From Ranitomeya imitator (Eukaryota), in NCBI RefSeq assembly GCF_032444005.1, contig NC_091282.1, positions 492,094,001 through 492,158,000 of the forward strand: a DNA stretch of 64,000 nucleotides. Reading direction: 5' to 3'. The notes beneath the pieces are model-generated. The model was not told the origin of the DNA, did not search any database, and saw nothing but the letters and a program-made list of their open reading frames with translations. Positions 4,701 through 64,000 of this stretch are shown here, piece after piece. Within the stretch, counting starts at the first letter, position 1. Each line of letters begins with the position of its first letter. The position numbers and the translations under genes were made by a program.

Positions 4701-7615
4701 GCTGCCTTGGACAGACTTGGCACAAGCCACTCTATTTGGCAGACTCCAGAGAAATCCCAATACCCTCATAGATCGTAAGATTGGTATCTGAGTTATGTGT
4801 TATTCTGTAATGTCTATTGTCTGTACAAGTCCCCTCTAAAATGTAAAGTGCTGCAGAATATATTGGCGCTATAGAAATAACATTTATAATAATTATTATT
4901 TTAACCCCTGCACAGTGATCTGGGTTTACAATAGGACACAGTGTAGTGCTACCATGGAAGGGCTGCCATCCAGAGGTAGGAATTGTTGCCAAGCAGGGTC
5001 AGGGCTGAAATGTCATGTCAAAGAGAAAATTAGGATCTGTAAGAATGGTAAAAAGCAAACCAGGGTCAAAACAAGAATATACTAAATCAAACAGGAGCAG
5101 AAGATGCACACATATCCAAGGAAACACTAAGCTATATCTGGCAACTTCTAGCAGTAAGCTGGAAGCATTAGCAGGGGGTGGTGCTCTCCACTTGGCTTGG
5201 GCAGGGAGCTGATAATTTCAGCTGGAAACACACTCCCTACTGCCAGACTGGAAGGCACTACAGGTCCCAGCCATTCTAACCTTAGTGGCTGGACAGAGCC
5301 CGCAGTCCAGAGCTTCTGGTTCTGACATCTCTTCTATCACTAGTGCAGTCTACACAGTGAATAGGACGGAGCCTGACAACAGAAGCAGAAATCGCAGGAG
5401 CAAATTCTGGTGCCAATGTGACAGAAACAAGGCCAAGCGACTCAACAGTGCACAAAAACACAGGAACTGGGGTATAGAAAAATGTCAGCAGGTACCCTGG
5501 ATTGAAGAGTCAAATGTGACATATTTGGCTGTAACAGAAGGCAGTTTGTTCAATGAAGGGCTGGAGAGCAGTATAATAATGAGTGTTTGCAGGCAACAAT
5601 GAGCATGGTGGAGGCTCATGGCAAGTTTGGGGCTGCAAATGGAGTTGGGCTTTGGTCAAGATTAATGGTGTCCTCAATGCTGAAAAATGCAGACAGATAC
5701 TTACCCATAAGTAAATTAATAAAATATTGGTGGTAGTGGATCACCTGGTACCTTCAATGGGGCATGTGTCATCAGGCCTTGGGGGTGGCATCTATGCAGT
5801 GTAGCCTGCGTTCACTCTGAGGGGGTCCCCTCACAGCTACCAGGCGATCCACTACCACCAATATTTTATTGATTTAGTTTCCTATTGCCTTATATGAAGT
5901 ACCAGCTCATTTCCAGCATATCTTTACTACAGTTCAAGCTTACAAATTGAGAAAAACTCGGTCTTGGGTCGGACTGTTACGAAATCGCTTGGAAAAGATT
6001 TTCTTAGTTTTTTGTCATTTATCACTGTGGTGAACTTGTGTGCAAAGTAATAAACATACATAATTGGAAATAACCCCTACTATTGTGGCGGTATACTATA
6101 TGCTACTATCTTTACTACTATCCTATAAGGTTAAATGAAGAGACAGAAGTTCTTTCAAAACCTGTGTACAAGTGTACCTAAAAGAATTGATGCTTTGTTG
6201 TTGCCTTGAAGGTAAATTGTGGTCACACCAAATATTGATTTGATTTAGATTTCTCTTTTGCTCAGACTCCATTTTAATTAAAAGTTTTTCTTTTAGGGGA
6301 ATAGATAATTCTGTTGTTTCTGCTCCATCCAACATCTGTGGCCCTATTTGTATTGTTGACCCTGCAAAGTTTCCTCAAACAGAAAATAAACTCACTTCTT
6401 TGAACATTAGTACAAAAAGAGGGGGAGGAAAGTAGGAGGAAGCTGAACATTGAAGGGCGTCTCTTCCTCCACCCAGTCACTGGCAGTACAGTGTAGCTTT
6501 GCAGAGACTCTTGCACGTTACTCTTAGGAGGATACATCTCTGAAATCTTGCTTTTACATTGCAAAGCAATGGAGGCGGTGAGTCCTATTCCTAGGATGTG
6601 AAGTGAATGCACTGCTAAAGAAATCCCATTTGCACTCTGCTTAACTTGAAAGTGAGATCTCAGGGGACAGAGCACCTCTTCACAAGAAGCTATGAAGAAC
6701 ACTTGGCATCCTGTCAATAGGTAGGTCTCTATAACGTTCACTTTGTTGCAGCTGTAAATAATGGAAAGTGTTATTATTACTAGTTTCTCATTTAGAAATG
6801 TCTTTCTATCCAATGTGGCCTAGATTAACGGATCTTGAAAACAAGAAATAGCTGCGGCTCACAGGCACTTTGCCAAAATTGTTTGGAAAGCAATGCTCGG
6901 GATCACTTCCTAGAAGAGGCGTTCTCCTTATACATGTGAACATAATGGAATATGTTTTATCCGATCATCTTTGTAACCTAAGCATGCAAAACTACAAAGA
7001 TTATCGTGTAATGCATTACTTCCCAGTACAGTTTTCACAGAGGACAAAATATCACCCCTCCCTATTATACTCCCACAACTATCCCTATACATTAGATTGT
7101 TGCTGCTGCTTTCTTCTGGAGAAGCCCTCAGCAAGTTCCTAAGATCAGCATGGTGCTTCATGAACATTAGTCCAGCTTCACCTATGAGAATATTTAGCAT
7201 ATTTTGGAATATGTCTCTAATTGCACTATGCCTTCATGTACGAAAGATCCAGGGACAAAAAAACTGCTTACTTTCACCAGGATTAAGTCAGCAAGTGGTT
7301 AAAACAGAAATATTACAGGCAGCAGTGAGTAAATGGCTTTTACCTGTTCAATGTTGTGCTCATATCAAGGACACTTCATGATCGGAAATGTCACAACACT
7401 ATTGCCAAATGACTTTAATGGTAACTACGGTGGGATAGGAAGACGTTCCCAGTAGCACATGCCAATGCCGTACAGTAGTTGTGTGGCACATGCCAATGCC
7501 TTACAGCAGTTGTGAGTTTTGGGCCAGAAGTATTTCTTGACATGAATAAAGGAGAATGAAAATCACAATAATTTATTGAATCCATAATTGTTGTTTTCTG
7601 TCTTTGCGAACCCAG

Positions 7616-7713
7616 GATGAAGACTTATCTTTCTGTCTATTACCTGATACAATTCTGTGGCCATTCCTGGATTTTCACCAATTTGACAGCCAGGCTTCTT
7701 TTCTTTGGAAAAG
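7616..7713 (+). CDS. HACD4: HACD4 (very-long-chain 3-hydroxyacyl-CoA dehydratase 4), first visible coding exon
   Basis: Acceptor cccag|G and donor AAAG|gtatt. Translates (R)MKTYLSVYYLIQFCGHSWIFTNLTARLLFFGK, matching the human HACD4 motif YYLIQFCGHSWIFTNM as recalled. Ends in phase 1. Confidence 0.95.
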
Positions 7714-11942: not shown

Positions 11943-12070
11943 ATTCTTTTGCAGATACGTTCTATACAATTGGACTAGTAATGCAAGCCTGCCAGCTACT
12001 CTCCGTCCTGGAGCTCCTCCATATTCTAATGGATTTAGAGCAACAATCATTTCTGCCAAAATTTTCTCAG
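11943..12070 (+). CDS. HACD4: HACD4 coding exon
   Basis: aacag|AT...TCTCAG|gtagac, 128 nt. Translates DSFADTFYTIGLVMQACQLLSVLELLHILMDLEQQSFLPKFSQ; phases fit both neighbouring exons. Confidence 0.95.
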
Positions 12071-12627: not shown

Positions 12628-12740
12628 GTAACCGAAAGACTAATCATCTTGTTTCTGGTAATCAGCAGTCAAGAAGAGGTGCAGAGTAAATGCATAGTGT
12701 GTTTTCTCTTCTTCCTCTGGAATCTGTGGGATGTTATCAG
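12628..12740 (+). CDS. HACD4: HACD4 coding exon
   Basis: ttcatag|GTA...ATCAG|gtaata, 113 nt. Translates VTERLIILFLVISSQEEVQSKCIVCFLFFLWNLWDVIR. Confidence 0.95.
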
Positions 12741-13332
12741 GTAATAAGATTTATCTCCTGATGATGGAACATATTTTCGTGCTGCAACAGATTTTCCTGC
12801 TAATCGTCCTCTAACCTCTACGTTGCACTATTTCTGGCTGTAAAGTGAGTTAATTGAGAATCCAAGTGAGCTCCTTTTGACGGGAAAGTTTATATCTCTA
12901 ATCTTCCTTCTTCGGAGCACTTCTCTGCTGCTTTAAGACCACAAAGGTCAACTCAACTTTCATGTGTTTTTATATATGTTATATGTAAGAGGTTGTTTTT
13001 TTTCAATTAAGCTGAAATCACACCTCCCCTTTTTTTCTCGTCCGCTAACACGGTTCATTTTTCATCAGCGTGCTGGATGTGATTTTGATCCATTTTGTGT
13101 CTGTGTGTCCGTTTTTATCTTCCATGCGTCATCAGTTTTCATCATATGCAAAAAAAAAATAACGAACATTTCCTGAACTTATTAATGAAAGTAAGAGGTA
13201 CAGTCATAGCATTCTTCAGCCTTGTTTTGTCCTCTTAGAAACCAATGAACAACTATCACTTTGTTAGGATACATTATCAATAACAGCCATAGAGGATGAT
13301 TCAAAGTTGGTAGCCAACATCATTCCATATTC

Positions 13333-13663
13333 CAGGTTCATATTGCGTTGGTGCAGTCCGTTCAACGCATGCGTTAAACGGACTGCACCAACGCTAGTGC
13401 CATTTAAAGATCGCGCTATGAGATCGCGATAGCGCAGATGCTCCACCTACGCTAGCGGTGACGGACCCAGAAATGCTGCAGACCGCATCCGAGGGTCCGT
13501 CACAGAATGACGGCACATCGCTAATGCATGCTGATTATGACATGCGTTAGCGATGAACTACATAATGGCAGTCAATGGGTGTGCCAACGCATCCGTTGCA
13601 TGGCGTTAGTGCCGCTGTGTAACGGATGCCGTCAGCACATTGCCATTGACGCAATGTGAACCC
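13333..13663. mobile_element. PIF/Harbinger-type MITE related to 16654-17033
   Basis: GGTTCATATTGCG...CGCAATGTGAACCC-TTA; the left end is degenerate. Confidence 0.7.
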
Positions 13664-14085
13664 TTATGCAGCCATTTTTACTTTTTATCCAGAACTAACA
13701 CATTTATACTAGATCTGGTGGATAAATGCTGGGAAGTGAGGGTCTTGCCACCACACATCATCAGAAAAGGGTCCTATGACCTGAAGCCAAGGGGATCAGA
13801 TTGTGCATGTACACGTTTTTCTCCATTGACCATAACAGTGCGAGACGTACTAACACATTGCCAGCTCTGTTGGGTTTCTCCTCCTACGTGCATCCACTGT
13901 TGTCCATCTTCTTTTGCAAAACATGGGTGATTGAACTCCAATTTCACCGCTGAGACATTTTTCCTTTGGTTGAAAAACCATCTAAGCTCATTAACACATG
14001 AATACCAAGTACAGCTATTCCTAGAACATCAATAAATAGATCTGACAACATTTTACATGACTGATTGTATTGATCTTCATTTCAG

Positions 14086-14192
14086 ATATCCATACCTGTT
14101 GTTATCGGCAGTAGGAATAGACTACCCAGCTCTAACATGGCTCTACCATACATTATGGATTCCATTTCATCCTTTATCACTGCTAGCTGAAG
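14086..14192 (+). CDS. HACD4: HACD4 coding exon containing the active-site segment
   Basis: ttcag|ATAT...GAAG|gtatgg, 107 nt. Translates YPYLLLSAVGIDYPALTWLYHTLWIPFHPLSLLAE. Confidence 0.95.
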
Positions 14193-15144: not shown

Positions 15145-16388
15145 TTAAGCCATGGTCTCCCCTCTGCAGGACCATCTACTTGACTGGAACAATAACTACA
15201 AGCCCCTAACTTGCATTGACTATAGAGAAATCTATTACCAAGCTATATTTTATCTACATGCTTAGTTTTACGGCTGATCATTGTACTTTCTGACTGACAT
15301 GGGCTGTCCTCCTCAGTGAGCCCCTGAAACTTAGTACAATACCACCATTTCCAGCACTAGGTCTGTCATTCCTTCTCCCCTTTTCTATAAAATGCCTTTG
15401 TACTTGCCTTTTCGCACCATGCTTCCTTGTTGCTAGCCTTTTTTCCTTCAGTCCCACAACGAAGAACCGAGGTTCCTCTTCGTCAGTTGATTCCTCTACT
15501 GGCAAACTCCTGACCTAAACATTGGTAAGGTGATTGGGGCCAGCAGGACTCCCTCCCCCTACATGGCTTAGGGCACAGATGCGGAGCTAAATTTTTATTG
15601 CTCACAGGCAATTAAATAGTGGCTGGCAGGGCAACTTATTTAGAAGCAACCCAGCAGCAGTTTGGCTGCTAACACCACATCCCGTCTCAGGCAGTGGGGC
15701 CAGTGAGGTATGACCGGCATGAAACCTTCAAAGGATCTGCAGACCACTACTGTGGACATGTCTTATGGCAGATGCTGCCTAAGACTTGTGCGTGTGTGCA
15801 TGTATCTAAAATATATATAATTATATTTTTATAATGCCAACAAATTCTGCAGCACATTACAATTAAGCGGGACATGTACAAATAAAAGCAAAGTAACACA
15901 TAGTTCAACAGTTACAGGAGTAGTGAGGGCCATACTTCTTTCCAAACTAGCTCTAGGTCGGTGAGATTGGATGGAGGCGTCTGTGAACAGCAACCACAGA
16001 TTCTCAATGAGATTTAAATCTGGACTCTGACTGGGCCATTCAAGCACATGAATATACTTTGATGTAACCCATTACATTGTAGCTCTGGCAGTATGTTTAG
16101 GGTCTTTGGACTACTGGAAGAGGACCCTATCACGCCCCACTATCAAGTCCTTTTCAGCCTCTAACAGGTTTTCCTCCAGAATTACCCTAAATTTAGCTCC
16201 ATTCATTTTCCCATTGACTTTGACCAACTTCCCTGTCACTGCTGAAGAAAAGAATCCCCACATTAACGGTAGTGTTCTAAATTCTCTAAAAAGAAATATA
16301 GAGTGCTCTCAGTCTGAGAGACAAAATAGGAATCTTGTGGGTGTGATACCTTTTAATGGCTAACAAAATAAAGTGAATGATGTTACAA

Positions 16389-22160: not shown

Positions 22161-23609
22161 TATAGTGAAGAGCAACAAGGTTTAAAACTTTTGACTTTCA
22201 GGCTCCATATCACATCCATTTCTGCTTTGAACTTGAGACTGCCATCATTTTATAGAAGATCATCTTGGATATCTCATACTTAAATTTGACTTGCAACTAT
22301 TTAGCATATAATCAGTTATGCAGATTCTTGTCATGTCACTGTATTTCTACTTTTTGCTCCTAAAGATCTAAATGTTATTTTTTTATTATTTTGCTAGTAT
22401 TTTGTAAATCTACCTTGGCTTTCAACACTGCCTGAATCCGTCTGGGCATGCTCTCGATCAGATTCAAACATGTGTCGACCGAAATTTGATCTAAGGTCTC
22501 TTCGACTCACTTGGGTATGTATACAATTTTTTCTTCAATTATACCCACAAGTGTTTGATTGGGTTGAGGTCTGGGGACTGTGGGGGCCAATCCAGCACCT
22601 CTACTTCATTGTCATTGAACCATTTCTTTGGCAATCTCGATTTATGCTTCGTATTGTTGGAACATTATATCATCCTTTTTATACCCATAGTACTTGAGAG
22701 TATGAAGTAACTCATCTTGTAGGATACTCACATATAGCTCAGCATTGAGACCACCATCAATCCTGGTCAAGTATCCAATGCCTTTGGCTGTGAATCAACC
22801 CCATATCATCAGGTTTCCTTCAACAAACTTGACATTTCCTTCAATTTCTCAATCCGTTAGCCCCCTTTTCCCTTGCTTTTTTCCGACTCTTTCGCACCTC
22901 TAAGAGCCTAGTCCATTGACTTTCGTGTTAAAATCACCAGTTTCAAATCTTTAAATTTTCACTTTTCGTACTTGTTTGCAAACTCGATCCAACGCTTCTT
23001 ATGACAATTTTTTTTTTCGGGCCAGCATTCCAGACTTGCATAATGTGCTTGCATCAATGTCTTTGATCTATTATAAAGCATATGGGCCACCTCCACTGCC
23101 ATGTTTGTCATGCCTGAACTGATAGACCTTGGGATGAGCAGACTTATTGACACTGATATTTTGCCCGGATGTCCACCTTTTGGCTTCTGAACGGACGGAT
23201 TTCAGTTCTAATTCTTCAAACTGTCATGGCACTCACATGATGCAGTTTTGCAATTTTCTTGGCCATAAGACCGCAATCAATGAGCTGGATGACGCCGTTT
23301 CTCTTTTCTTGGGAAATGGTCTTCATTCCTGTTCTTCAATTCAAACCAGTGACCTTTCACTTGGGAATCAACCTAGCAACACACTGAGCTATTAAGGAAT
23401 GTGAGGGCAGGTTGTATTTTGTAGTATTCAGGAAGAAAAATATTTTTCTACCCTAAGGACCAAACAGTAACAATGCACTGACATGACAAGAATCTGCATA
23501 ACTAATCATATGCTAAATAGTTGCAAGTCAAAATTATGTATGATATATCCAAGAAGATCTTCTATAAAATTATGGTAGTCTCACTATCAAAGCAGTAGTG
23601 GATGGTGAG

Positions 23610-24411
23610 TGTTGTGAATTCTGTGGCAGAGCTCCCTCCTGTGGTCACAAGTGGTACTTCGGCTGGTTCTCTCTGTGAGCTTCCGTTGGTGGAGGAAAGT
23701 GGTACTGCGGCTTCTGAGTTTCCTTCCTCAGGTGATGTGGTGAAGTCGTTAGGTGCTGCTCTATTTAACTCCACCTAGTGTTTTGATCCTGGCCTCCAGC
23801 CAATGTTCTAGTATTGGACCTGTTTCCTCCTGGATCGTTCCTGTGGCCTGCTGCTCTGCATAGCTAAGTTCCTCTTTGCTATTTGTTTGCTGTTTTTTTT
23901 CTGTCCAGCTTGTCAATTTGTTTTTTACTGCTTGCTGGAAGCTCTGGGACGCAGAGGGTGTACCTCCGTGCCGTTAGTTCGGTACGGAGGGTCTTTTTGC
24001 CCCCTTTGCGTGGTTTTTGTGTTGACCGCAAAGTTACCTTTCCTATCCTCGCTCTGTTCAGAAAGTTGGGCCTCGCTTTGCTAAATCTATTTCATCTCTA
24101 CGTTTGTCTTTTCATCTTAACTCACAGTCATTATATGTGGGGGCTGCCTTTTCCTTTGGGGTATTTCTCTGAGGCAAGGTAGGCTTATTTTCTATCTTCA
24201 GGCTAGCTAGTTTCTCAGGCCGTGCCGAGTTGCATAGGGAGCGTTAGGCGCAATCCACGGCTGCCTTTAGTGTGGTTGGAGAGGATTGGGGATTGCGGTC
24301 AACAGAGTTCCCACGTCTCAGAGCTCGTTCTTGTTTTTTGGGTTATTGCCAGGTCACTGTATGTGCGCTGACCTCTATGTCCATTGTGGTACTGAATTAC
24401 CTTTCATAACA
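23610..24411 (+). repeat. 5' LTR (802 bp)
   Basis: TGTTGTGAAT...CATAACA. Matches 30333-31144 apart from about 9 substitutions (counted by eye) and one 10-bp indel. TATA-like TATTTAA at 23762-23768. Confidence 0.97.
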
Positions 24412-24548
24412 GTACTGGAGGCCAAAAGTACTAATGATTCCCAATAGAGGGAAAAAAGAAGTTCTGAGACCATTTTTTTTTCTTTGCAATGTGTTTTGCC
24501 TTTTTTTTCCCCTAGACATTTGGGTGGTTCAGGACACAGGTGTAGCAA

Positions 24549-27500
24549 TGGACATTAAAGGTCTGTGTGGATCAGCTCACGGCAAGAGTACAAACTATTC
24601 AAGACTTTGTGGTTCAGAATTCTATGTTAGAACCGAGAATTCCTATTCCTGATTTGTTTTTTGGAGATAGAACTAAATTTCTGAGTTTCAAAAATAATTG
24701 TAAACTATTTCTGGCTTTGAAACCTCGCTCCTCTGGTGACCCAGTTCAACAAGTTAGGATCGTTATTTCTTTTTTGCGTGGCGACCCTCAGGACTGGGCA
24801 TTTTCTCTTGCGTCAGGAGATCCTGCATTAAGTAATATCGATGCATTTTTCCTGGCGCTCGGATTGCTGTACGATGAGCCTAATTCTGTGGATCAGGCAG
24901 AGAAGAATTTGCTGGCTCTGTGTCAGGGTCAGGATGAAATAGAGGTATATTGTCAGAAATTTAGAAAGTGGTCCGTACTCACTCAGTGGAATGAAGGTGC
25001 GCTCGCAGCCATTTTCAGAAAAGGTCTCTCTGAAGCCCTTAAGGATGTCATGGTGGGATTTCCTATGCCTGCTGGTCTGAATGAGTCTATGTCTTTGGCC
25101 ATTCAGATCGGTCGACGCTTGCGCGAGCGTAAATCTGTGCACCATTTGGCGGTATTACCTGAGCTTAAACCTGAGCCTATGCAGTGCGATAGGACTTTGA
25201 CCAGAGTTGAACGGCAAGAACACAGACGTCTGAATGGGCTGTGTTTCTACTGTGGTGATTCCACTCATGCTATCTCTGATTGTCCTAAGCGCACTAAGCG
25301 GTTCGCTAGGTCTGCCACCATTGGTACGGTACAGTCAAAATTTCTTCTGTCTGTTACCTTGATCTGCTCTTTGTCATCGTATTCTGTCATGGCATTTGTG
25401 GACTCAGGCGCTGCTCTGAATTTGATGGACTTGGAGTATGCTAGGCGTTGTGGGTTTTTCTTGGAGCCCTTGCAGTGTCCTATTCCATTGAGAGGAATTG
25501 ATGCTACGCCTTTGGCCAAGAATAAGCCTCAGTACTGGACCCAGCTGACCATGTGCATGGCTCCTGCACATCAGGAGGTTATTCGCTTTCTGGTGTTGCA
25601 TAATCTGCATGATGTGGTCGTGTTGGGGTTGCCATGGCTACAAGTCCATAATCCAGTATTAGATTGGAAATCCATGTCTGTGTCCAGCTGGGGTTGTCAG
25701 GGGGTACATGGTGATGTTCCATTTCTGTCTATCTCATCATCCACCCCTTCTGAGGTTCCTGAGTTCTTGTCTGATTACCGGGATTTATTTGATGAGCCCA
25801 AGTCCGATACCCTACCTCCGCATAGGGATTGTGATTGTGCTATCGATTTGATTCCTAGTAGTAAATTCCCAAAAGGTCGACTGTTTAATTTATCTGTGCC
25901 TGAGCACGCCGCTATGCGGAGTTATGTGAAGGAGTCTTTTGGGAAGGGGCATATTCGCCCGTCATCATCGCCATTAGGAGCAGGGTTCTTTTTTGTAGCC
26001 AAGAAGGATGGTTCACTGAGACCTTGTATAGATTACCGCCTTCTAAATAAGATCACGGTTAAATTTCAGTACCCCTTGCCATTGTTATCTGATTTGTTTG
26101 CTCGGATTAAGGGGGCTAGTTGGTTCACCAAGATAGATCTTCGTGGTGCGTATAATCTTGTGCGTATTAAGCGAGGCGATGAGTGGAAAACTGCATTTAA
26201 TACGCCCGAGGGCCATTTTGAGTGTCTAGTAATGCCATTCGGACTTGCCAATGCTCCATCAGTGTTTTAGTCCTTTATGCATGACATCTTCCGAGAGTAC
26301 CTGGATAAATTCCTGATTGTGTACTTAGATGACATTTTGATCTTCTCGGATGATTGGGAGTCTCATGTGAAGCAGGTCAAAACAGTGTTTCAGGTCCTGC
26401 GTGCTAATTCTTTGTTTGTGAAGGGATCAAAGTGTCTCTTTGGTGTTCAGAAGGTTTCATTTTTGGGGTTCATCTTTTCCCCTTTTACTATCGAGATGGA
26501 CCCTGTTAAGGTCCAAGCCATCCATAATTGGACTCAGCCGACATCTCTGAAAAGTCTGCAAAAGTTCCTGGGCTTTGCTAATTTTTATCGTCGCTTCATC
26601 TGCAATTTTTCTAGTATTGCAAAACCATTGACCGATTTGACCAAGAAAGGTGCTGATTTGGTCAATTGGTCTTCTGCTGCGGTGGAAGCTTTTCAAGAGT
26701 TGAAGCATCGTTTTTCTTCTGCCCCTGTGTTGTGTCAACCAGATGTTTCGCTTCCGTTCCAGGTCGAGGTTGATGCTTCTGAGATTGGAGCAGGGGCTGT
26801 TTTGTCGCAGAGAAGTTCTGATTGCTCGGTGATGAAACCATGCGCCTTCTTTTCCAGGAAGTTTTCCCCTGCTGAGCGAAATTATGATGTGGGCAATCAA
26901 GAGTTGCTGGCCATGAAGTGGGCATTCGAGGAGTGGCGTCATTGGCTTGAAGGAGCTAAGCATCGCGTGGTGGTCTTGACTGATCATAAGAACTTGACTT
27001 ATCTTGAGTCTGCTAAGCGGTTGAATCCTAGACAGGCTCGTTGGTCGCTGTTTTTTGCCCGTTTTGACTTTGTGATTTCGTACCTTCCGGGCTCTAAAAA
27101 TGTGAAGGCGGATGCTCTGTCTAGGAGTTTTGTGCCCGACTCTCCGGGTTTGTCTGAGCCGGCGGGTATCCTCAAAGAGGGAGTAATTGTGTCTGCCATC
27201 TCCCCTGATTTGCGGTGGGTGCTGCAAAAATTTCACGCTAATAAACCTGATCGTTGCCCAGCGGAGAAACTGTTTGTCCCTGATAGGTGGACGAATAAAG
27301 TTATCTCTGAGGTTCATTGTTCGGTGTTGGCTGGTCATCCTGGAATCTTTGGTACCAGAGAGTTAGTGGCTAGATCCTTTTGGTGGCCATCTCTGTCGCG
27401 GGATGTGCGTACTTTTGTGCAGTCCTGTGGGATTTGTGCTCGGGCTAAGCCCTGCTGTTATCGTGCCAGTGGGTTGCTTTTGCCCTTGCCGGTCCCAAAG

Positions 27501-30500
27501 AGGCCTTGGACACATATCTCTATGGATTTTATTTCAGATCTTCCCGTCTCTCAAAAGATGTCAGTCATTTGGGTGGTCTGTGATCGCTTCTCTAAGATGG
27601 TCCATTTGGTACCCTTGTCTAAATTGCCTTCCTCCTCTGATTTGGTGCCATTGTTTTTCCAGCATGTGGTTCGTTTACATGGCATTCCAGAGAATATCGT
27701 TTCTGACAGAGGTTCCCAGTTTGTGTCGAGGTTTTAGCGAGCCTTTTGTGGTAGGATGGGCATTGACTTGTCTTTTTCCTCGGCTTTCCATCCTCAGACT
27801 AATGGCCAGACCGAACGAACCAATCAGACCTTGGAAACATATCTGAGATGCTTTGTTTCTGCTGATCAGGATGACTGGGTGTCCTTTTTGCCTTTGGCTG
27901 AGTTCGCCCTTAACCCCTTCATGACCGGGGGATTTTTCATTTTTCCGTGTTCGTTTTTCGCTCCCCTCCTTCCCAGAGCCATAACTTTTTTATTTTTCCG
28001 TCAATTTGGCCATGTGAGGGCTTATTTTTTGCGGGACGAGTTGTACTTTTGAACGACATCATTGGTTTTAGCATGTCGTGTACTAGAAAACGGGAAAAAA
28101 ATTCCAAGTGCGGTGAAATTGCAAAAAGTGCAATCCCACATTGGTTTTTTGTTTGGCTTTTTTGCTAGGTTCACTAAATGCTAAAAATGCTAAAAATGAC
28201 CTGCCATTATGATTCTCCAGGTCAGTACGAGTTCATATTTAAGTAAATAGGGCAGCACACTGCAGCGCCAAAACATGCAAACTTGAAAACACAAAATTTG
28301 AACTGCATTACTGCACTGAAAATATGAAAAATGAGAGCTTTTAGCGCATAAAAATGGCCAATTTTATGTGTACCTCGTAGCCACGATAAGGCATCTCTCT
28401 TATACGAGGTAGGTCAAGCGTAGGGCCTCGTATAAGAGAGATGCCTTATCGTGGCTACGAGGTACACATAAAATTGGCCATTTTTATGCGCTAAAAGCTC
28501 TCATTTTTCATATTTTCAGTGCAGTAATGCAGTTCAAATTTTGTGTTTTCAAGTTTGCATGTTTTGGCGCTGCAGTGTGCTGCCCTATTTACTTAAATAT
28601 ATACGAGTTGGCGACTCTGGGTTCAGCACCTGTTCACACTGTGTCTATGTTTGGATGTGCAGATCAGGTTTTTTGAAAAGTACGAGTTCATAGACACCTA
28701 ACATGACTAGGTTATTTTTTATCTAAGTGGTGAAAAAAATTTCCAAACTTTGCTAAAAAAAAAAAAAAAATTGCGCCATTTTCCGATACTCGTAGCGTCT
28801 CCATTTTTCATGATCTGGGGTCGGTTGAGGGCTTATTTTTTGCGTGCCGAGATGACGTTTTTAATGATAGCATTTTGGTGCAGATACGTTCTTTTGATCG
28901 CCCGTTATTGCATTTTAATGCAATGTCGCGGCGACCAAAAAAACGTAATTCTGGCGTTTCGAATTTTTTTCCCGCTACGCTGTTTAGCGATCAGGTTAAT
29001 ACTTTTTTTTAATTGATAGATCGGGCGATTCTGAGCGCGGCGATACCAAATATGCGTAGATTTGATATTTTTTTTATTGATTTATTTTGATTGGGGCGAA
29101 AGGGGGGTGATTTAAACTTTTATGTTTTTTTATTTTTTTCACATTTTTTTAAACTTTTTTTCTTAACTTTTGCCATGCTTCAATAGCCTCCATGGGAGGC
29201 TAGAAGCTGGCACAGCACGATCGGCTCTGCTACATAGCAGCGATCTGATCGCTGCTATGTAGCAGAAATGGAGGTGTGCTGTGAGCGCCGACCACAGGGT
29301 GGCGCTCACAGCCACCGCTCATCAGTAACCATAGAGGTCTCTGGGACCTCTATGGCTACAATATACAAGCATCGCCGACCCCGATCATGTGACGGGGGTC
29401 GGCGATGACGTCATTTTCGGCCGGAAGCGGTAGTTAAATGCCGCAGTCTGCGTTTGACAGCGGCATTTAACTAGTTAATAGGTGCGGGCAGATCGCGATT
29501 CTGCCCGCACCTATTGCGGGCACATGTCAGCTGTTCAAAACAGCTGACATGTCCCGGCTTTGATGCGGGCTCACCGCGGAGCCCTGCATCAAAGCAGGGG
29601 AGCCGGCATCGGACGGTATAGTACGTCCGATGCCGGTAAGGGGTTAATAATCGGGCCAGCTCGGCTACCTTGGTTTCACCGTTTTTCTGCAACTCTGGGT
29701 TCCATCCTCGTTTCTCTTCAGGGCAGGTTGAGTCTTCGGACTGTCCTGGTGTGGATACTGTGGTGGACAGGTTGCAGCAGATTTGGACTCATGTAGTGGA
29801 CAATTTGACTTTGTCCCAGGAGAAGGCTCAACGTTTCGCTAATCGCAGACGCTGTGTGGGTCCCCGACTTCGGGTTGGGGACTTGGTTTGGTTATCTTCT
29901 CGTCATATTCCTATGAAGGTTTCCTCTCCTAAGTTTAAACCTCATTTTATTGGTCCGTATAGGATTTCTGAGGTTCTTAATCCTGTCTTTTCGTCTGACC
30001 CTTCCAGATTCTTTTTCCATACATAACGTATTCCATAGGTCATTGTTGCGGAGAAACGTGGCACCTATGGTTCCATCTGTTGATCCTCCTGCCCCGGTTT
30101 TGGTGGAGGGGGAGTTGGAGTATATTGCGGAGAAGATTTTGGATTCTCGTGTTTCAAGGCGGAAACTCCAGTATCTGGTTAAGTGGAAGGGTTATGCTCA
30201 GGAAGATAATTCCTGGGTCTTTGCCTCTGATGTCCATGCTCCCGATCTTGTTCGTGCCTTTCATATGGCTCATCCTGGTCGTCCTGGGAGCTCTGGTGAG
30301 GGTTCGGTGACCCCTCCTCAAGGGGGGGGTACTGTTGTGAATTCTGTGGCAGAGCTCCCTCCTGTGGTCACAAGTGGTACTTCGGCTGGTTCTCTCTGTG
30401 AGCTTCCGTTGGTGGAGGAAAGTGGTACTGCGGCTTCTGAGTTTCCTTCCTCAGGTGATGTGGTGAAGTCGTTAGGTGCTGCTCTATTTAACTCCACCTA

Positions 30501-30501
30501 G
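24549..30501 (+). pseudogene. Disrupted gag-pol polyprotein (Gag, CCHC, PR, RT, RNase H, IN, chromodomain)
   Basis: Motifs seen: [14 protein letters not shown] (25242-25283), FVDSGA, YLDD, EVDAS, the integrase HHCC and DDE region, GPYR, and chromodomain EYIAEKILDSR...YLVKWKGY. Lesions: a frameshift just after the ATG near 24549, in-frame TAG at 26268-26270 and 27735-27737, an insertion at 27914-29643, and a frameshift near 29990. Confidence 0.95.
27914..29643. mobile_element. TTAA-flanked piggyBac-type non-autonomous element inserted in the integrase
   Basis: TTAA at 27910-27913 and 29644-29647 with ends CCCCTT...AAGGGG. Removing it restores EFALNNRASSAT. Same family as 19941-21174, in the opposite orientation. 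Confidence 0.93.
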
Positions 30502-31144
30502 TGCTTTGATCCTGGCCTCCAGCCAATGTTCTAGTATTGGACCTGTTTCCTCCTGGATCGTTCCTGTGGCCTGCTGCTCTGCATAGCTAAGTTCCTCTTT
30601 GCTATTTGTTTGCTGTTTTTTTTCTGTCCAGCTTGTCAATTTGTTTTTTACTGTTTGCTGGAAGCTCTGGGACGCAGAGGGTGTACCTCCGTGCCGTTAG
30701 TTCGGTACGGAGGGTCTTTTTGCCCCCTTTGCGTGGTTTTTGTAGGGTTTTGTGTTGACTGCAAAGTTACCTTTCCTATCCTCGCTCTGTTCAGAAAGTT
30801 GGGCCTCACTTTGTTAAATCTATTTCATCTCTACGTTTGTCTTTTCATCTTAACTCACAGTCATTATATGTGGGGGCTGCCTTTTCCTTTGGGGTATTTC
30901 TCTGAGGCAAGGTAGGCTTATTTTCTATCTTCAGGCTAGCTAGTTTCTCAGGCCGTGCCGAGTTGCATAGGGAGCGTTAGGCGCAATCCACGGCTGCCTT
31001 TAGTGTGGTTGGAGAGGATTAGGGATTGCGGTCAACAGAGTTCTCACGTCTCAGAGCTCGTTCTTGTTTTTTGGATTATTGCCAGGTCACTGTATGTGCG
31101 CTGACCTCTATGTCCATTGTGGTACTGAATTACCTGTCATAACA
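30333..31144 (+). repeat. 3' LTR (812 bp)
   Basis: Starts just after the polypurine tract plus TAC and ends CATAACA; a direct repeat of the 5' LTR. Confidence 0.97.
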
Positions 31145-31844: not shown

Positions 31845-31976
31845 TTTACACAGTTTATGAATCACTTCCGTATTTTGAAGCCCTTGGCACATTTTGCTAC
31901 ACGATCTCACTGCCATTTGTGATTTCCATTCACTTTCCTTACATTTTGAAAATATATCTGGTCCTGTTACCTGCCG
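31845..31976 (+). CDS. HACD4: HACD4 coding exon
   Basis: ttgcag|TT...GCCG|gtaagg, 132 nt. Translates VYTVYESLPYFEALGTFCYTISLPFVISIHFPYILKIYLVLLPA. Confidence 0.95.
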
Positions 31977-32052: not shown

Positions 32053-32135
32053 GTGTGTTGTACACGTGCAGCCATCTGTACTCTAAAAGAAAGTTGTATC
32101 TGAAGCAGCAAGAGTTAAAGCTAAAAGTGAAGTAA
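32053..32135 (+). CDS. HACD4: HACD4 last coding exon with stop codon
   Basis: cttag|GT, 83 nt, after a 76-nt intron. Translates GVLYTCSHLYSKRKLYLKQQELKLKVK-stop (TAA 32133-32135). The C-terminal KLKVK fits the KxKxx ER-retrieval pattern. Confidence 0.92.
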
Positions 32136-38229: not shown

Positions 38230-41046
38230 CCCCTTAATCCCATATGACGTACTATCCCGTCGAGGTGGGGTGGGCCCGTATGACCACCGACGGGATAGTA
38301 CGTCATATGCAATCGGCCACGCTCACGGGGGGAGCGCGTCCGATCGTGGCCGGGTGTCAGGTGACTATTGCAGCTGACATCCGTCACGGACCGCTCCCGG
38401 CACATTAACCCCTGGAACACTGCGATCAAACATGATCACAGCGTTCCAGCAATACAGGGAAGCATCGCGCAGGGCTCTCTGCGTGCTTCCCTGAGACCGT
38501 CGGTACAAGGCGATGTGCTCACCTTGTACCGAGCGTGTCCTCCCTGCAGGCCCCAGATCCAAAATGGCCGCGGGGCTACATCCGGGTCCTGCAGGGAGGT
38601 GGCTTGCCAGCGCCTGCTCAGAGCAAGCACTGGTAAGCCTGCAGCACTGCTTGTCAGCAGATCAGTGATCTGACCCTATAACATGATGCCCCCCTGGGGN
38701 NNNNNNNNNNNNNNNNNNNNNNNNNNNNNNNNNNNNNNNNNNNNNNNNNNNNNNNNNNNNNNNNNNNNNNNNNNNNNNNNNNNNNNNNNNNNNNNNNNNN
38801 NNNNNNNNNNNNNNNNNNNNNNNNNNNNNNNNNNNNNNNNAAAAAAAATATTGTTCCCATAAATACATTTATCTAAATAATAAAAAAAACAAACAATAAA
38901 AGTACACATATTTAGCATCGCCGCGTCAGTAACGACCCCACCTACAAAACTGTCCCGCTAGATAACCCCTTCAAAGAATGCAGTAAAAAAAAAAAGGCAA
39001 AAAACAACGCTATATTATCATACTGCCGAGTGGAATAGCACGCGATCAAAAAGACAGATATAAATAACCATGGTACCGCTGAAAACGTCATCTTGTCCCG
39101 CAAAAAACGAGCCGCAATACAGCATCAGCAGCGAAAAAATAAAAAAGTTATAGTCCTCAGAATAAAGCAATGCAAAAATAATTATTTTTTCTATAAAATA
39201 GTTTTTATAGTATAAAAGCGCCAAAACATGAAAAATGATATAAATGAGGTGTCGCTGTAAACGTACTGATCCGAAGAATAAAACTGCTTTATCAATTTTA
39301 CCAAACATGGAACGATATAAACGCCCCCCCAAAAGAATTTCATGAATAGCTGGTTTTTGGTCATTCTGCCTCACAAAAATTGGAATAAAAAGCGATCAAA
39401 AAATGTCACGTGCCCGAAAATGTTACCAATAAAAACGTCAACTTGTCTCACAAAAAACAAGTCCTCACATGACTCTGTGGACCAAAATATGGAAAAATTA
39501 TAGCTCTCAAAATGTGGAGACGCAAAAACTATTTTTTGCAATAAAAAGCATCTTTTAGTGTGTGACGGCTGCCAATCATAAAAATCCGCTAAAAAACCCG
39601 CTATAAAAGTAAATCAAACCCCCCTTCATCACCCCCTTAGTTAGGGAAAAATAATAAAATTTAAAAAATGTATTTATTTCCATTTTCCCATTAGGGTTAG
39701 AGCTAGGGTTAGGGGTAGGGTTAAGGCTAGGGTTAGGGTTCGGGCTAAGGTTAGGGTTGGGATTAGGATTTCAGTTAGAATTGGGGGTTTCCACTGTTTA
39801 GGCACATCAGGGGCTCTCCAAACGTGACATGGCGTCCGATCTCAATTCCAGGCAATTCTGCATTGAAAAAGTAAAACAGTGCTCCTTCCCTTCCGAGCTC
39901 TCCCGTGTGCCCAAACAGTGGTTTACCCCCACATATGGGGTATCAGCGTACTCAGGACAAATAGGTCAACAACTTTTGGCATCCAATTTCTTCCCTTACC
40001 TTTGGGAAAATAAAAAATTGGGGGCGTAAAGATCATTTTTGTGGGGAAAAAATATGATTTTTTATTTTTACAGCTCTGCATTATAAACTTCTGTGAAGCT
40101 CTTGGTGGGTCAAAGTGCTCACCACATATCTAGATAAGTTCCTTAGGGGGTCTACTTTCCAAAATGGTGTCACTTGTAGGGGGTTTCAATGTTTAGGCAC
40201 ATCAGGGGCTCTCCAAACGCAACATGGCGTCCCATCTCAATTCCAGTCAATTTTGCATTGAAAAGTCAAACAGCGCTCCTTCCCTTCCGAGCTCTCCCAT
40301 CCGCCCAAACAGTGGTTTACCCCCACATATGGGGTATCGGTGTACTCAGGACAAATTGTGCAACAACTTTTGGGGTCCAATTTCTCCTGTTACCCTTGGT
40401 AAAATAAAACAAATTGGAGCTGAAGTAAATTTTTTGTGAAAAAAAGTGAAATGTTCATTTTTATTTAAACATTCCAAAAATTCCTGTAACACCTGAAGGG
40501 TTAATAAACTTCTTGAATGTGGTTTTGAGCACCTTGAGGGGTGCAGTTTTTAGAATGGTGTCACACTTGGTTATTTTCTATCATATAGACCCCTCAAAAT
40601 GACTTCACATGAGATGTAGTCTCTAAAAAAAATGGTGTTGTAAAAATGATAAATTGCTGGTCAACTTTTAACCCTTATATCTCCCTAGCAAAAAAAAAAG
40701 TGGGGCTACAATATTGTGCTGATGTGAAGTAGACATGTGGGAAATGTTACTTAAGTACTTTGTGTGACATATCTCTGTGAATTAAGGGCATAAAAATTCA
40801 AAGTTGCAAAATTGTGAAATTTACAAAATTTTCACCAAATTTCCATTTTTTTCACAAATAAACTAAGGTAATATCAAAGATATTGTACCACTATCATGAA
40901 GTACAGTATGTCATGAGAAAACAATGTCAGAATCATCAGGATCCGTTGAAGTGTTCCAGAGTTATAACCTCATAAAGGGACGGTGGTCAGAATTGTAAAA
41001 ATTGGCCTGATCATTAACGTGCAAACCACCCTTGGGGCTTAAGGGG
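38230..41046. mobile_element. piggyBac-type non-autonomous element (family A, reverse orientation) in a FOCAD intron
   Basis: TTAA at 38226-38229 and 41047-41050; CCCCTT/AAGGGG ends. Spans the assembly gap. Confidence 0.85.
38700..38840. other. Assembly gap (141 N)
   Basis: Run of n characters inside a repetitive element. Confidence 1.
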
Positions 41047-60099: not shown

Positions 60100-63000
60100 T
60101 CAGACACTATGGTGACATTACCATAATACAGCAGTGCCTAGAAATGGTCAGACACTACGGTGACATCACCATAATCCAGCAGTGCCTAGAAATGGTCACA
60201 CACTACAGTGACATCACCATAATCCAGCAGTGCCTAGAAATGGTCAGACACTACAGTGACATCACCATAATCCAGCAGTGCCTAGAAATGGTCAGACACT
60301 ACGGTGACATCACCATAATCCAGCAGTGCCTAGAAAGGGTCAGACACTACGGTGACATCACCATAATCCAGCAGTGCCTAGAAATGGTCACACACTACAG
60401 TGACATCACCATAATCCAGCAATGCCTAGAAATGGTCACACACTACAGTGACATCACCATAATCCAGCAATGCCTAGAAATGGTCACACACTACAGTGAC
60501 ATCACCATAATCCAGCAGTGCCTAGAAATGGTCACACACTACAATGACATCACCATAATCCAGCAGTGCCTAGAAATAGTCACACACTACAGTGACATCA
60601 CCATAATCCAGCAGTGCCTAGAAATGGTCACACACTACGGTGACATCACCATAATCCAGCAATGCCTAGAAATGGTAACACACTACAGTGACATCACCAT
60701 AATCCAGCAGTGCCTAGAAATGGTCACACACTACAGTGACATCACCATAATCCAGCAGTGCCTAGAAATGGTCACACACTACGGTGACATCACCATAATA
60801 CAGCAGTGCCTAGAAATGGTAACACACTACAGTGACATCACCATAATCCAGCAGTGCCTAGAAATGGTCACACACTACAGTGACATCACCATAATCCAGC
60901 AATGCCTAGAAATGGTCACACACTACAGTGACATCACCATAATCCAGCAATGCCTAGAAATGGTCACACACTACAGTGACATCACCATAATCCAGCAGTG
61001 CCTAGAAATGGTCACACACTACAGTGACATCACCATAATCCAGCAATGCCTAGAAATGGTCAGACACTACGGTGACATCACCATAATCCAGCAGTGCCTA
61101 GAAATGGTCACACACTACAGTGACATCACCATAATCCAGCAGTGCCTAGAAATGGTCAGACACTACGGTGACATCACCATAATCCAGCAGTGCCTAGAAA
61201 TGGTCACACACTACAGTGACATCACCATAATCCAGCAGTGCCTAGAAATGGTCACACACTACGGTGACATCACCATAATCCAGCAGTGCCTAGAAATGGT
61301 CAGACACTACGGTGACATCACCATAATCCAGCAGTGCCTAGAAATGGTCACACACTACAGTGACATCACCATAATCCAGCAATGCCTAGAAATGGTCACA
61401 CACTACAGTGACATCACCATAATCCAGCAATGCCTAGAAATGGTCACACACACTACAGTGACATCACTATAATCCAGCAGTGCCTAGAAATGGTCACACA
61501 CTACAGTGACATCACCATAATCCAGAGGTGCCTAGAAATGGTCAGACACTACAGTGACATCACCATAATCCAGCAAGGCCTAGAAATGGTCATACACTAG
61601 TGACATCACCATAATCCAGCAATGCCTAGAAATGGTCACACATTACAGTGACATCACCATAATCCAGCAGTGCCTAGAAATGGTCACACACTACAGTGAC
61701 ATCACCATAATCCAGCAGTGCCTAGAAATGGTCAGACACTACGGTGACATCACCATAATCCAGCAGTGCCTAGAAATGGTCACACACTACAGTGACATCA
61801 CCATAATCCAGCAATGCCTAGAAATGGTCACACACTACAGTGACATCACCATAATCCAGCAGTGCCTAGAAATGGTCACACACTACAGTGACATCACCAT
61901 AATCCAGCAATGCCTAGAAATGGTCACACACTACAGTGACATCACCATAATCCAGCAATGCCTAGAAATGGTCACACACTACAGTGACATCACCATAATC
62001 CAGCAGTGCCTAGAAATGGTCACACACTACGGTGACATCACCATAATCCAGCAATGCCTAGAAATGATCACACACTACGGTGACATCACCATAATCCAGC
62101 AATGCCTAGAAATGGTCAGACACTACGGTGACATCACCATAATCCAGCAATGCCTAGAAATGGTAACACACTACAGTGACATCACCATAATCCAGCAGTG
62201 CCTAGAAATGGTCACACACTACAGTGACATCACCATAATCCAGCAGTGCCTAGAAATGGTCACACACTACAGTGACATCACCATAATACAGCAGTGCCTA
62301 GAAATGGTAACACACTACAGTGACATCACCATAATCCAGCAGTGCCTAGAAATGGTCACACACTACAGTGACATCACCATAATCCAGCAGTGCCTAGAAA
62401 TGGTCACACACTACAGTGACATCACCATAATCCAGCAATGCCTAGAAATGGTCACACACTACAGTGACATCACCATAATCCAGCAATGCCTAGAAATGGT
62501 CACACACTACAGTGACATCACCATAATCCAGCAGTGCCTAGAAATGGTCACACACTACAGTGACATCACCATAATCCAGCAATGCCTAGAAATGGTCAGA
62601 CACTACGGTGACATCACCATAATCCAGCAGTTCCTAGAAATGGTCAGACACTACGGTGACATCACCATAATCCAGCAGTGCCTAGAAATGGTCAGACACT
62701 ACGGTGACATCACCATAATCCAGCAGTGCCTAGAAATGGTCACACACTACAGTGACATCACCATAATCCAGCAGTGCCTAGAAATGGTCACACACTACAG
62801 TGACATCACCATAATCCAGCAGTGCCTAGAAATGGTCAGACACTACGGTGACATCACCATAATCCAGCAGTGCCTAGAAATGGTCACACACTACAGTGAC
62901 ATCACCATAATCCAGCAATGCCTAGAAATGATCACACACTACGGTGACATCACCATAATCCAGCAATGCCTAGAAATGGTCAGACACTACGGTGACATCA

Positions 63001-64000
63001 CCCTTAATCCAGCAATGCCTAGAAATGGTCACACACTACAGTGACATCACCATAATCCAGCAGTGCCTAGAAATGGTCACACACTACAGTGACATCACCA
63101 TAATCCAGCAATGCCTAGAAATGGTCACACACTACAGTGACATCACCATAATCCAGCAATGCCTAGAAATGGTCACACACTACAGTGACATCACCATAAT
63201 CCAGCAATGCCTAGAAATGGTCACACATTACAGTGACATCACCATAATCCAGCAGTGCCTAGAAATGGTCACACACTACAGTGACATCACCATAATCCAG
63301 CAGTGCCTAGAAATGGTCACACACTACAGTGACATCACCATAATCCAGCAATGCCTAGAAATGGTCACACACTACAGTGACATCACCATAATCCAGCAAT
63401 GCCTAGAAATGGTCACACACTACAGTGACATCACCATAATCCAGCAGTGCCTAGAAATGGTCACACACTACAGTGACATCACCATAATCCAGCAATGCCT
63501 AGAAATGGTCACACACTACAGTGACATCACCATAATCCAGCAATGCCTAGAAATGGTCAGACACTACGGTGACATCACCATAATACAGCAATGCCTAGAA
63601 ATGGTAACACACTACAGTGACATCACCATAATCCAGCAGTGCCTAGAAATGGTCACACACTACAGTGACATCACCATAATACAGCAGTGCCTAGAAATGG
63701 TAACACACTACAGTGACATCACCATAATCCAGCAGTGCCTAGAAATGGACAGACACTACGGTGACATCACCATAATACAGCAGTGCCTAGAAATGGTCAC
63801 ACACTACAGTGACATCACCATAATCCAGCAGTGCCTAGAAATGGTCACACTCTACGGTGACATCACCATAATCCAGCAGTGCCTAGAAATGGTCACACAC
63901 TACAGTGACATCACCATAATCCAGCAATGCCTAGAAATGGTCACACACTACAGTGACATCACCATAATCCAGCAATGCCTAGAAATGGTCACACACTACA
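60100..64000. repeat. 48-bp tandem array of about 80 units, running off the window end and presumably intronic in FOCAD
   Basis: Unit ATGGTCACACACTACAGTGACATCACCATAATCCAGCAGTGCCTAGAA, with a few recurrent variant positions. Confidence 0.99.

Follow-up and report, generated by a model that had tools for sequence, protein, structure and literature searches.

Vertebrates have four 3-hydroxyacyl-CoA dehydratases, of which HACD4 is the least understood, and its role has been called unclear (PMC11730842). In yeast Phs1, the founder of the family, Y149 and E156 are essential and lie seven residues apart (PMC5008698; PMC13464631). They correspond to Y142/E149 in TM5 of the Caenorhabditis elegans enzyme (CeHACD) and to Y176/E183 of human HACD2 (HsHACD2), and in the proposed chemistry the tyrosine removes the C2 proton while the glutamate helps the 3-OH to leave (PMC13464631). 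The first-pass annotation of a 64,000-nucleotide stretch of the Ranitomeya imitator genome, hereafter the window, described an HACD4 gene in which this tyrosine appeared to be replaced by histidine, and offered as explanations a maintained protein with altered or lost chemistry, a private allele, or an assembly error. The locus thus raises the question of whether the histidine is real, how old it is, and whether a HACD4 that carries it is still an enzyme.

The HACD4 gene and its active-site histidine

The gene model was built by searching all three forward frames for conserved segments and then fixing the splice sites. It consisted of six coding exons with AG/GT borders throughout (Table 1), encoded 219 aa ending in K-L-K-V-K-stop, and was 100% identical over these 219 aa to the NCBI protein P0057, HACD4 of R. 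imitator, named very-long-chain (3R)-3-hydroxyacyl-CoA dehydratase 4. The PTPLA profile (PF04387), precomputed for P0057 itself, was matched collinearly by exons 2, 3 and 4. Among the 120 matches listed, all those with an informative name were HACD4, and the next paralogue was HACD3, at 37–42% identity. The six coding exon sizes of R. imitator recurred in Eleutherodactylus coqui, Leptodactylus, Nanorana, Rhinoderma and Mixophyes, and Engystomops matched them apart from a last coding exon of 77 nt. A C-terminal di-lysine-type signal (KxKxx / KKxx) predicts residence in the ER. When the protein was searched against the 64-kb window by tblastn, each exon was found once, with no second copy of exon 4, including any mutually exclusive alternative.

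Table 1. Features of HACD4 in Ranitomeya imitator, in window coordinates.
Feature	Position	Strand	Remarks
Upstream exon, 229-aa isoform	6692..6720	+	M-K-N-T-W-H-P-V-N and 2 nt of an Arg codon; splices to 7616
Coding exon 1	7617..7713	+	97 nt; ATG start; TM1 including the Q-F-C-G-H-S-W-I-F motif; located by tblastn
Coding exon 2	11943..12070	+	128 nt; AG/GT; PTPLA profile positions 1-26 (E 0.089); junction 12070|12628 in RNA contigs
Coding exon 3	12628..12740	+	113 nt; PTPLA positions 27-63 (E 1.2e-6); both junctions in RNA contigs X10, X16 and X8
Coding exon 4	14086..14192	+	107 nt; AG/GT; end of TM4 and start of TM5 with the active-site segment; PTPLA positions 65-100 (E 1.6e-4)
His141 codon	14168..14170	+	CAT; catalytic-Tyr position (Phs1 Y149 / CeHACD Y142 / HsHACD2 Y176); His151 in the 229-aa isoform
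Glu148 codon	14189..14191	+	GAA; retained catalytic Glu (Phs1 E156 / CeHACD E149 / HsHACD2 E183)
Coding exon 5	31845..31976	+	132 nt; highly conserved S-L-P-Y-F-E loop and TM5/6 hairpin
Coding exon 6 and stop	32053..32135	+	83 nt; K-L-K-V-K tail (KxKxx) at 32118-32132

The upstream exon encodes the first nine residues of P0057 in frame, followed by a GT donor. The resulting N-terminal extension was confined to annotations of Ranitomeya, and in other frogs the annotated protein begins at M-K-T-Y-L. In P0081 (164 aa), from an older annotation of R. imitator, the protein runs past L-L-A-E into V-P-Q-R-R-T-E-V-P-L-R-Q-L-I. This ending corresponds to an open frame some 1.2 kb beyond exon 4 (15391-15510) and represents either an alternative 3' exon or a mis-annotation.

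Translation of 14156-14191 (+) gave W-I-P-F-H-P-L-S-L-L-A-E. The first-pass annotation had the sequence of this segment and both dyad codons right, but began the segment at 14162, which is the Pro codon, W-I lying 6 nt upstream. Its assignment of the gene to HACD4 and its description of an otherwise intact gene, with six exons and a KxKxx tail, agreed with our model. Spliced RNA contigs from two independent R. imitator studies (X10 and X16) used the junctions 12070|12628 and 12740|14086 exactly and had no differing letter over 14082-14192, with C, and not T, at 14168. The His codon is thus part of correctly spliced transcripts and no assembly artefact. About 10 further R. imitator runs contained 14% of the sampled words of a 2.5-kb stretch, which equals its exon share. 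The window gene is the single-copy, expressed HACD4 orthologue of R. imitator.

That the histidine might be private to this one genome, whether as an allele, as a somatic or assembly error or as an RNA/DNA artefact, is scarcely conceivable. Beside the RNA contigs of two other studies, identical across exon 4, histidine was present in the genomes of R. variabilis, Phyllobates and Anomaloglossus and in at least six further hyloid species, at least 10 other hyloid species in all; the sole caveat was that Logan contigs omit rare variants, so that a low-frequency Tyr allele at 14168 could escape notice.

The adjoining residue, Phe140 (14165-14167), was present in both RNA contigs and was unique to R. 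imitator; Val occupied this position in R. variabilis and all other hyloids, and Val, Ile, Ala, Thr or Met across other frogs. The R. variabilis protein P0176, with His next to Val140, may explain one differing letter in a contig from a related organism.

The correspondence of His141 to the catalytic tyrosine was established by phmmer, in which the full R. imitator protein matched the C. elegans HACD hpo-8 (PDB 22of_B) with an E value of 5e-8. The alignment placed the frog H-P-L-S-L-L-A-E on Y-P-M-G-V-S-G-E, with His141 on Y142 and Glu148 on the glutamate seven residues beyond, as had been proposed from the window alone; residues of Phs1 were mapped via hpo-8 and the equivalence stated in PMC13464631. 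A search of solved structures with the 35-aa exon 4 peptide alone returned only noise, whereas the full-length protein matched the HACD entry. The AF2 model of R. imitator HACD4 (pLDDT 81.5, pTM 0.76) placed His141 and Glu148 in one long helix. Foldseek comparison of this model with Swiss-Prot models gave TM scores of 0.77–0.90 (PHS1, hpo-8, PAS2 and HACD1-4), and no significant match was obtained against a PDB copy predating the HACD entry.

Mammalian HACD4 (PTPLAD2; human Q5VWC8, mouse A2AKM2) is the orthologue, with 55–57% identity and TM scores of 0.87–0.90, and likewise has about 220–232 aa, a lysine-rich tail, the catalytic Glu and the S-L-P-Y-F-E loop, but it keeps the tyrosine (I-Y-P-L-C-V-L-A-E compared to F-H-P-L-S-L-L-A-E in the frog). 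HACD1/2 and hpo-8 (PDB 22of; PMC13464631) have in common with the frog protein the six-TM fold (TM 0.83–0.89, with hpo-8 at 0.83), the PTPLA domain and an aligned TM5 Glu, yet are only 17–24% identical and have the catalytic Tyr where the frog has His. Phs1 shows a similar fold (TM 0.77) at 18% identity, again with the Tyr that frog HACD4 lacks. Two further differences from hpo-8 were seen in one pairwise alignment, with low confidence: the frog protein has Tyr for the Arg of the upstream L-R-Y motif, and the TECR-binding U-loop (M170, N172, N175) has a 2-residue gap and no Asn. They hint, weakly, that HACD4 may depart from HACD1/2 beyond the tyrosine. In the model, then, R. imitator HACD4 is canonical in its predicted fold and its glutamate, but not in its tyrosine.

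Distribution and history of residue 141

HACD4 sequences were collected by a search seeded with exon 2, followed by the closest full match and cluster listings, and 154 sequences covered the site. Mammals, most fishes and most amphibians had the Tyr/Glu pair. Tyr141 was found in the myobatrachoids Pseudophryne and Mixophyes, all ranoids, pelobatoids, pipoids, discoglossoids, Ascaphus, salamanders and the caecilian Rhinatrema, and the only exception among the sampled non-hyloid amphibians was the caecilian Microcaecilia (Ile). His141 was carried by R. imitator, R. variabilis, Phyllobates, Anomaloglossus, Bufo bufo, B. gargarizans, Hyla, Dendropsophus, Rhinoderma and hyloid Logan transcripts, and is thus retained in Dendrobatoidea, Bufonidae, Hylidae and Rhinodermatidae, at least five families. 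Two hyloid genera differed in having Gln141, E. coqui (two assemblies) and Engystomops, and one species, Leptodactylus fuscus, had Tyr141. Glu148 was invariant in all 25 of the hyloid sequences with His or Gln. The alignment across amphibians suggested in the first-pass annotation consequently shows histidine throughout most hyloid lineages, with Gln and Tyr as exceptions.

At the nucleotide level, codon 141 was TAT or TAC in the outgroups, CAC in Rhinoderma and the hyloid transcripts, CAT in R. imitator, CAG in both Gln species and TAC in Leptodactylus; only proteins were used for Bufo gargarizans, Hyla sarda and Anomaloglossus isoform 2. Histidine is one transition away from the tyrosine codon, as first noted from the window. 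His141 is a real, expressed and ancient replacement of the catalytic tyrosine across most hyloids.

Changes in single species were also seen at the Tyr position, namely Ile in Microcaecilia (P0083/P0084), Ser in the shark Scyliorhinus torazame (P0125) and Phe in Polypterus (P0146), and Gln occupied the Glu position in the megophryid Leptobrachium (P0068). Each of these may be real or an annotation error.

In a gene tree built without column 141, hyloids formed a starred clade (99/96) with Myobatrachoidea as its sister group and with the inner families unresolved, and the order of events within hyloids, including the reading of the Leptodactylus Tyr as reversal rather than retention, rests on the published species tree (Portik 2023). 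In the dates of Portik et al. (2023) tabulated in PMC13621697, Hylidae split from the branch leading to Terrarana at 62.5 Ma, and Terrarana split from Dendrobatoidea, Leptodactylidae and Bufonidae at 62.0 Ma. Fitch parsimony on family topologies consistent with this tree, with Rhinoderma placed basal or with Hylidae, required a minimum of four changes, all of them in hyloids: Tyr to His on the stem, followed by His to Gln in Eleutherodactylus and, separately, in Engystomops, and by His to Tyr in Leptodactylus. Three changes would suffice only if Leptodactylidae were basal among hyloids, an arrangement not seen in the tabulated dates. The replacement of Tyr by His is accordingly placed by parsimony on the hyloid (Nobleobatrachia) stem, at least ~62 Myr ago, the codon passing from TAC to CAC and now being CAT in R. 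imitator.

On this reconstruction, position 141 then behaved as a permissive polar site, becoming Gln twice independently and Tyr again in Leptodactylus. Of the four changes later than the stem change, three fell in crown hyloids, whose share of the amphibian tree length is 16.7% (binomial P = 0.016), a rate of ~4.5 changes per unit tree length compared to 0.3 elsewhere, or ~15 times faster, in a post hoc test in which the clade was picked after the change had been seen and the counts are small. The pattern looks like that of a site freed from strict constraint after the first replacement, and only residue 141 itself looks relaxed. Tyr, His and Gln are all polar hydrogen-bonding residues, so that the site is not free to accept just any residue.

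Selection on HACD4 and its possible function

Selection was estimated from the coding sequences of six genomic loci and three transcripts. Pairwise dN/dS among hyloids was 0.10–0.17 at dS of 0.25–0.7, and maximum likelihood omega (GY+F3X4) was 0.20 for six hyloids, 0.23 for three Tyr-bearing neobatrachians and 0.20 overall. Column 141 was among the 30 columns with at least three states inside hyloids, while 59 of the 219 columns, including Pro142 next to His141, were invariant across 34 amphibians. The rest of HACD4, including Glu148 and Pro142, is under the same purifying selection as in the Tyr-bearing frogs; the relaxed function that the first-pass annotation had considered was not seen gene-wide. 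The catalytic tyrosine has been replaced and purifying selection continues (omega 0.20), as would be expected of a pseudoenzyme. Our search of the literature found no paper discussing HACD4 as such.

The loss of a catalytic residue and the variability of the site within hyloids could also be expected of a decaying gene, in the form of a unitary pseudogene young enough to look intact. This is highly improbable, given that all genomic HACD4 copies examined had intact frames, that exon structure matched in all hyloid genomes examined, that transcripts were spliced, that omega was 0.20 on a tree whose dS reached 0.7, and that more than a quarter of the columns have not changed across amphibians.

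A second replacement in the dyad was found in sauropsids. In turtles, tuatara, alligator and birds, 26 of 26 HACD4 clusters had Tyr/Lys, in the form Y-P-L-S-x-x-A-K (including P0002, P0006, P0082, P0085-P0087, P0090, P0096, P0110 and P0115); no squamate HACD4 was present among the matches listed. These proteins belong to the same orthologue group and show a parallel, ancient and clade-wide loss of one dyad residue in a conserved protein, but in the opposite half of the dyad from hyloids, Glu being replaced by Lys and Tyr kept. The sauropsid loss of Glu is older and wider than the hyloid loss of Tyr. Across 47 vertebrate HACD4 sequences, neither dyad residue was among the invariant or nearly invariant columns, which lay instead in the N-terminal Q-F-C-G-x-x-W-I, the S-Q-E-E-V-Q loop and the L-P-x-x-E loop (L166, P167 and E170 in P0057 numbering being invariant).

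HACD4 is reported to have been the least active paralogue in work by Sawai et al. of 2017, and the first-pass annotation stated the same of cell-based elongation assays. In line with this, elongation assays are reported to have detected no activity of HACD4 (as cited in PMC11049749). In HsHACD2, Y176A lost 80% of activity in one cycle, keeping ~20%, and E183A was nearly dead (PMC13464631). Loss of the tyrosine alone is thus no proof of inactivity; of the two residues the tyrosine is the less critical, and a His could take its place.

The job for which HACD4 is retained is probably independent of the textbook tyrosine chemistry. On balance we favor, with some reserve, the explanation that hyloid HACD4 is a catalytically weak or inactive protein working via its pocket or its partners, because Gln cannot act as a base and because the more critical Glu is missing from the sauropsid orthologue, the universal Glu to Lys change pointing in the same direction for the whole paralogue. 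HACD4 would sit in the ER membrane with its HACD fold and predicted acyl-CoA pocket intact and, with weak, altered or no dehydratase chemistry, would act by binding substrate or elongase partners. Its selected function would not depend on a Tyr general base, and position 141 would need at most a hydrogen-bonding side chain. Against this explanation, no hyloid has lost Glu148 or Pro142 and at least five families have kept His, and a selected active site would look alike. The restriction of residue 141 in hyloids to polar hydrogen-bonding side chains and the partial activity of HsHACD2 Y176A count against it as well.

Such a selected active site is what the main alternative proposes, namely that hyloid HACD4 is an active dehydratase with a His/Glu dyad, in which His141 as general base would remove the C2 proton and Glu148 would assist loss of the 3-OH, its pH optimum or range of substrates being possibly shifted. 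Among soluble dehydratases, FabZ and FabA pair His with an acidic residue (His/Glu and His/Asp dyads) and use the His as general base in the dehydration of 3-hydroxyacyl thioesters, although the resemblance is one of mechanism only, to an unrelated soluble hot-dog fold without homology. The invariance of Glu148 and Pro142 and the intact TM5 helix in hyloids, the retention of His from Dendrobatoidea to Rhinodermatidae, the strong purifying selection, and the partial activity of HsHACD2 Y176A, by which Tyr is replaceable in principle (PMC13464631), would all suit an enzyme of this kind. Yet Gln, which is no base, replaced His twice and Tyr came back once, with no decay of the gene in those lineages; the site changes ~15 times faster per tree length in hyloids than elsewhere, by the post hoc estimate above; sauropsid HACD4 lost its Glu and is still conserved; and even the Tyr-bearing mammalian HACD4 is reported to be without detectable elongation activity (as cited in PMC11049749). 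A His/Glu enzyme therefore seems to us unlikely, though deserving of serious consideration. Of the explanations first offered for the histidine, maintenance with altered or lost chemistry stands, and the private allele and assembly error fall.

The explanation by a weak or inactive protein may be extended, tentatively and as something rather short of an even chance, to HACD4 in most tetrapods, which would then be no conventional dehydratase and would have a conserved role that is non-catalytic or uses a different chemistry, e.g., binding acyl-CoA intermediates or elongase partners. As part of this tentative extension, the dyad would have been rewritten independently several times: Tyr to His or Gln in hyloids, Glu to Lys in sauropsids, and single changes in a caecilian, a shark, a bichir and a megophryid. 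One dyad residue or the other has been replaced for tens to hundreds of Myr in two large vertebrate clades, with purifying selection throughout. If the extension is true, the His/Glu pair of hyloids and the Tyr/Lys pair of sauropsids are natural experiments defining the function of HACD4. A reconstituted elongation assay in which the natural His, Gln, Tyr and Lys variants can be compared exists (PMC13464631). Caution is warranted before the name very-long-chain (3R)-3-hydroxyacyl-CoA dehydratase is taken to mean an active enzyme in each HACD4.

Other features of the window

Within intron 3, a segment of about 330 nt (13330-13665) had a summed contig word depth of 16,000–40,000, compared to 12.8 in its flanks, in a DNA run of a related species, and was also covered in RNA runs; it is a very high-copy interspersed repeat. 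Intron 4 measures 17.6 kb and holds a long retroelement at 23599-30912, in which near-identical ORF segments (23599-24081 and 30321-30912) look like LTRs, with pol-like ORFs between them. The ending of the ORF at 29917-30498 resembles by eye what we take to be a chromodomain motif. A run of 141 N at 38700-38840 marks an assembly gap or masked sequence. The window closes with a tandem array (62974-63999) of 48-nt (16-codon) units, which reads as one open frame of 342 codons encoding repeated I-T-I-I-Q-Q-C-L-E-M-V-T-H-Y-S-D.
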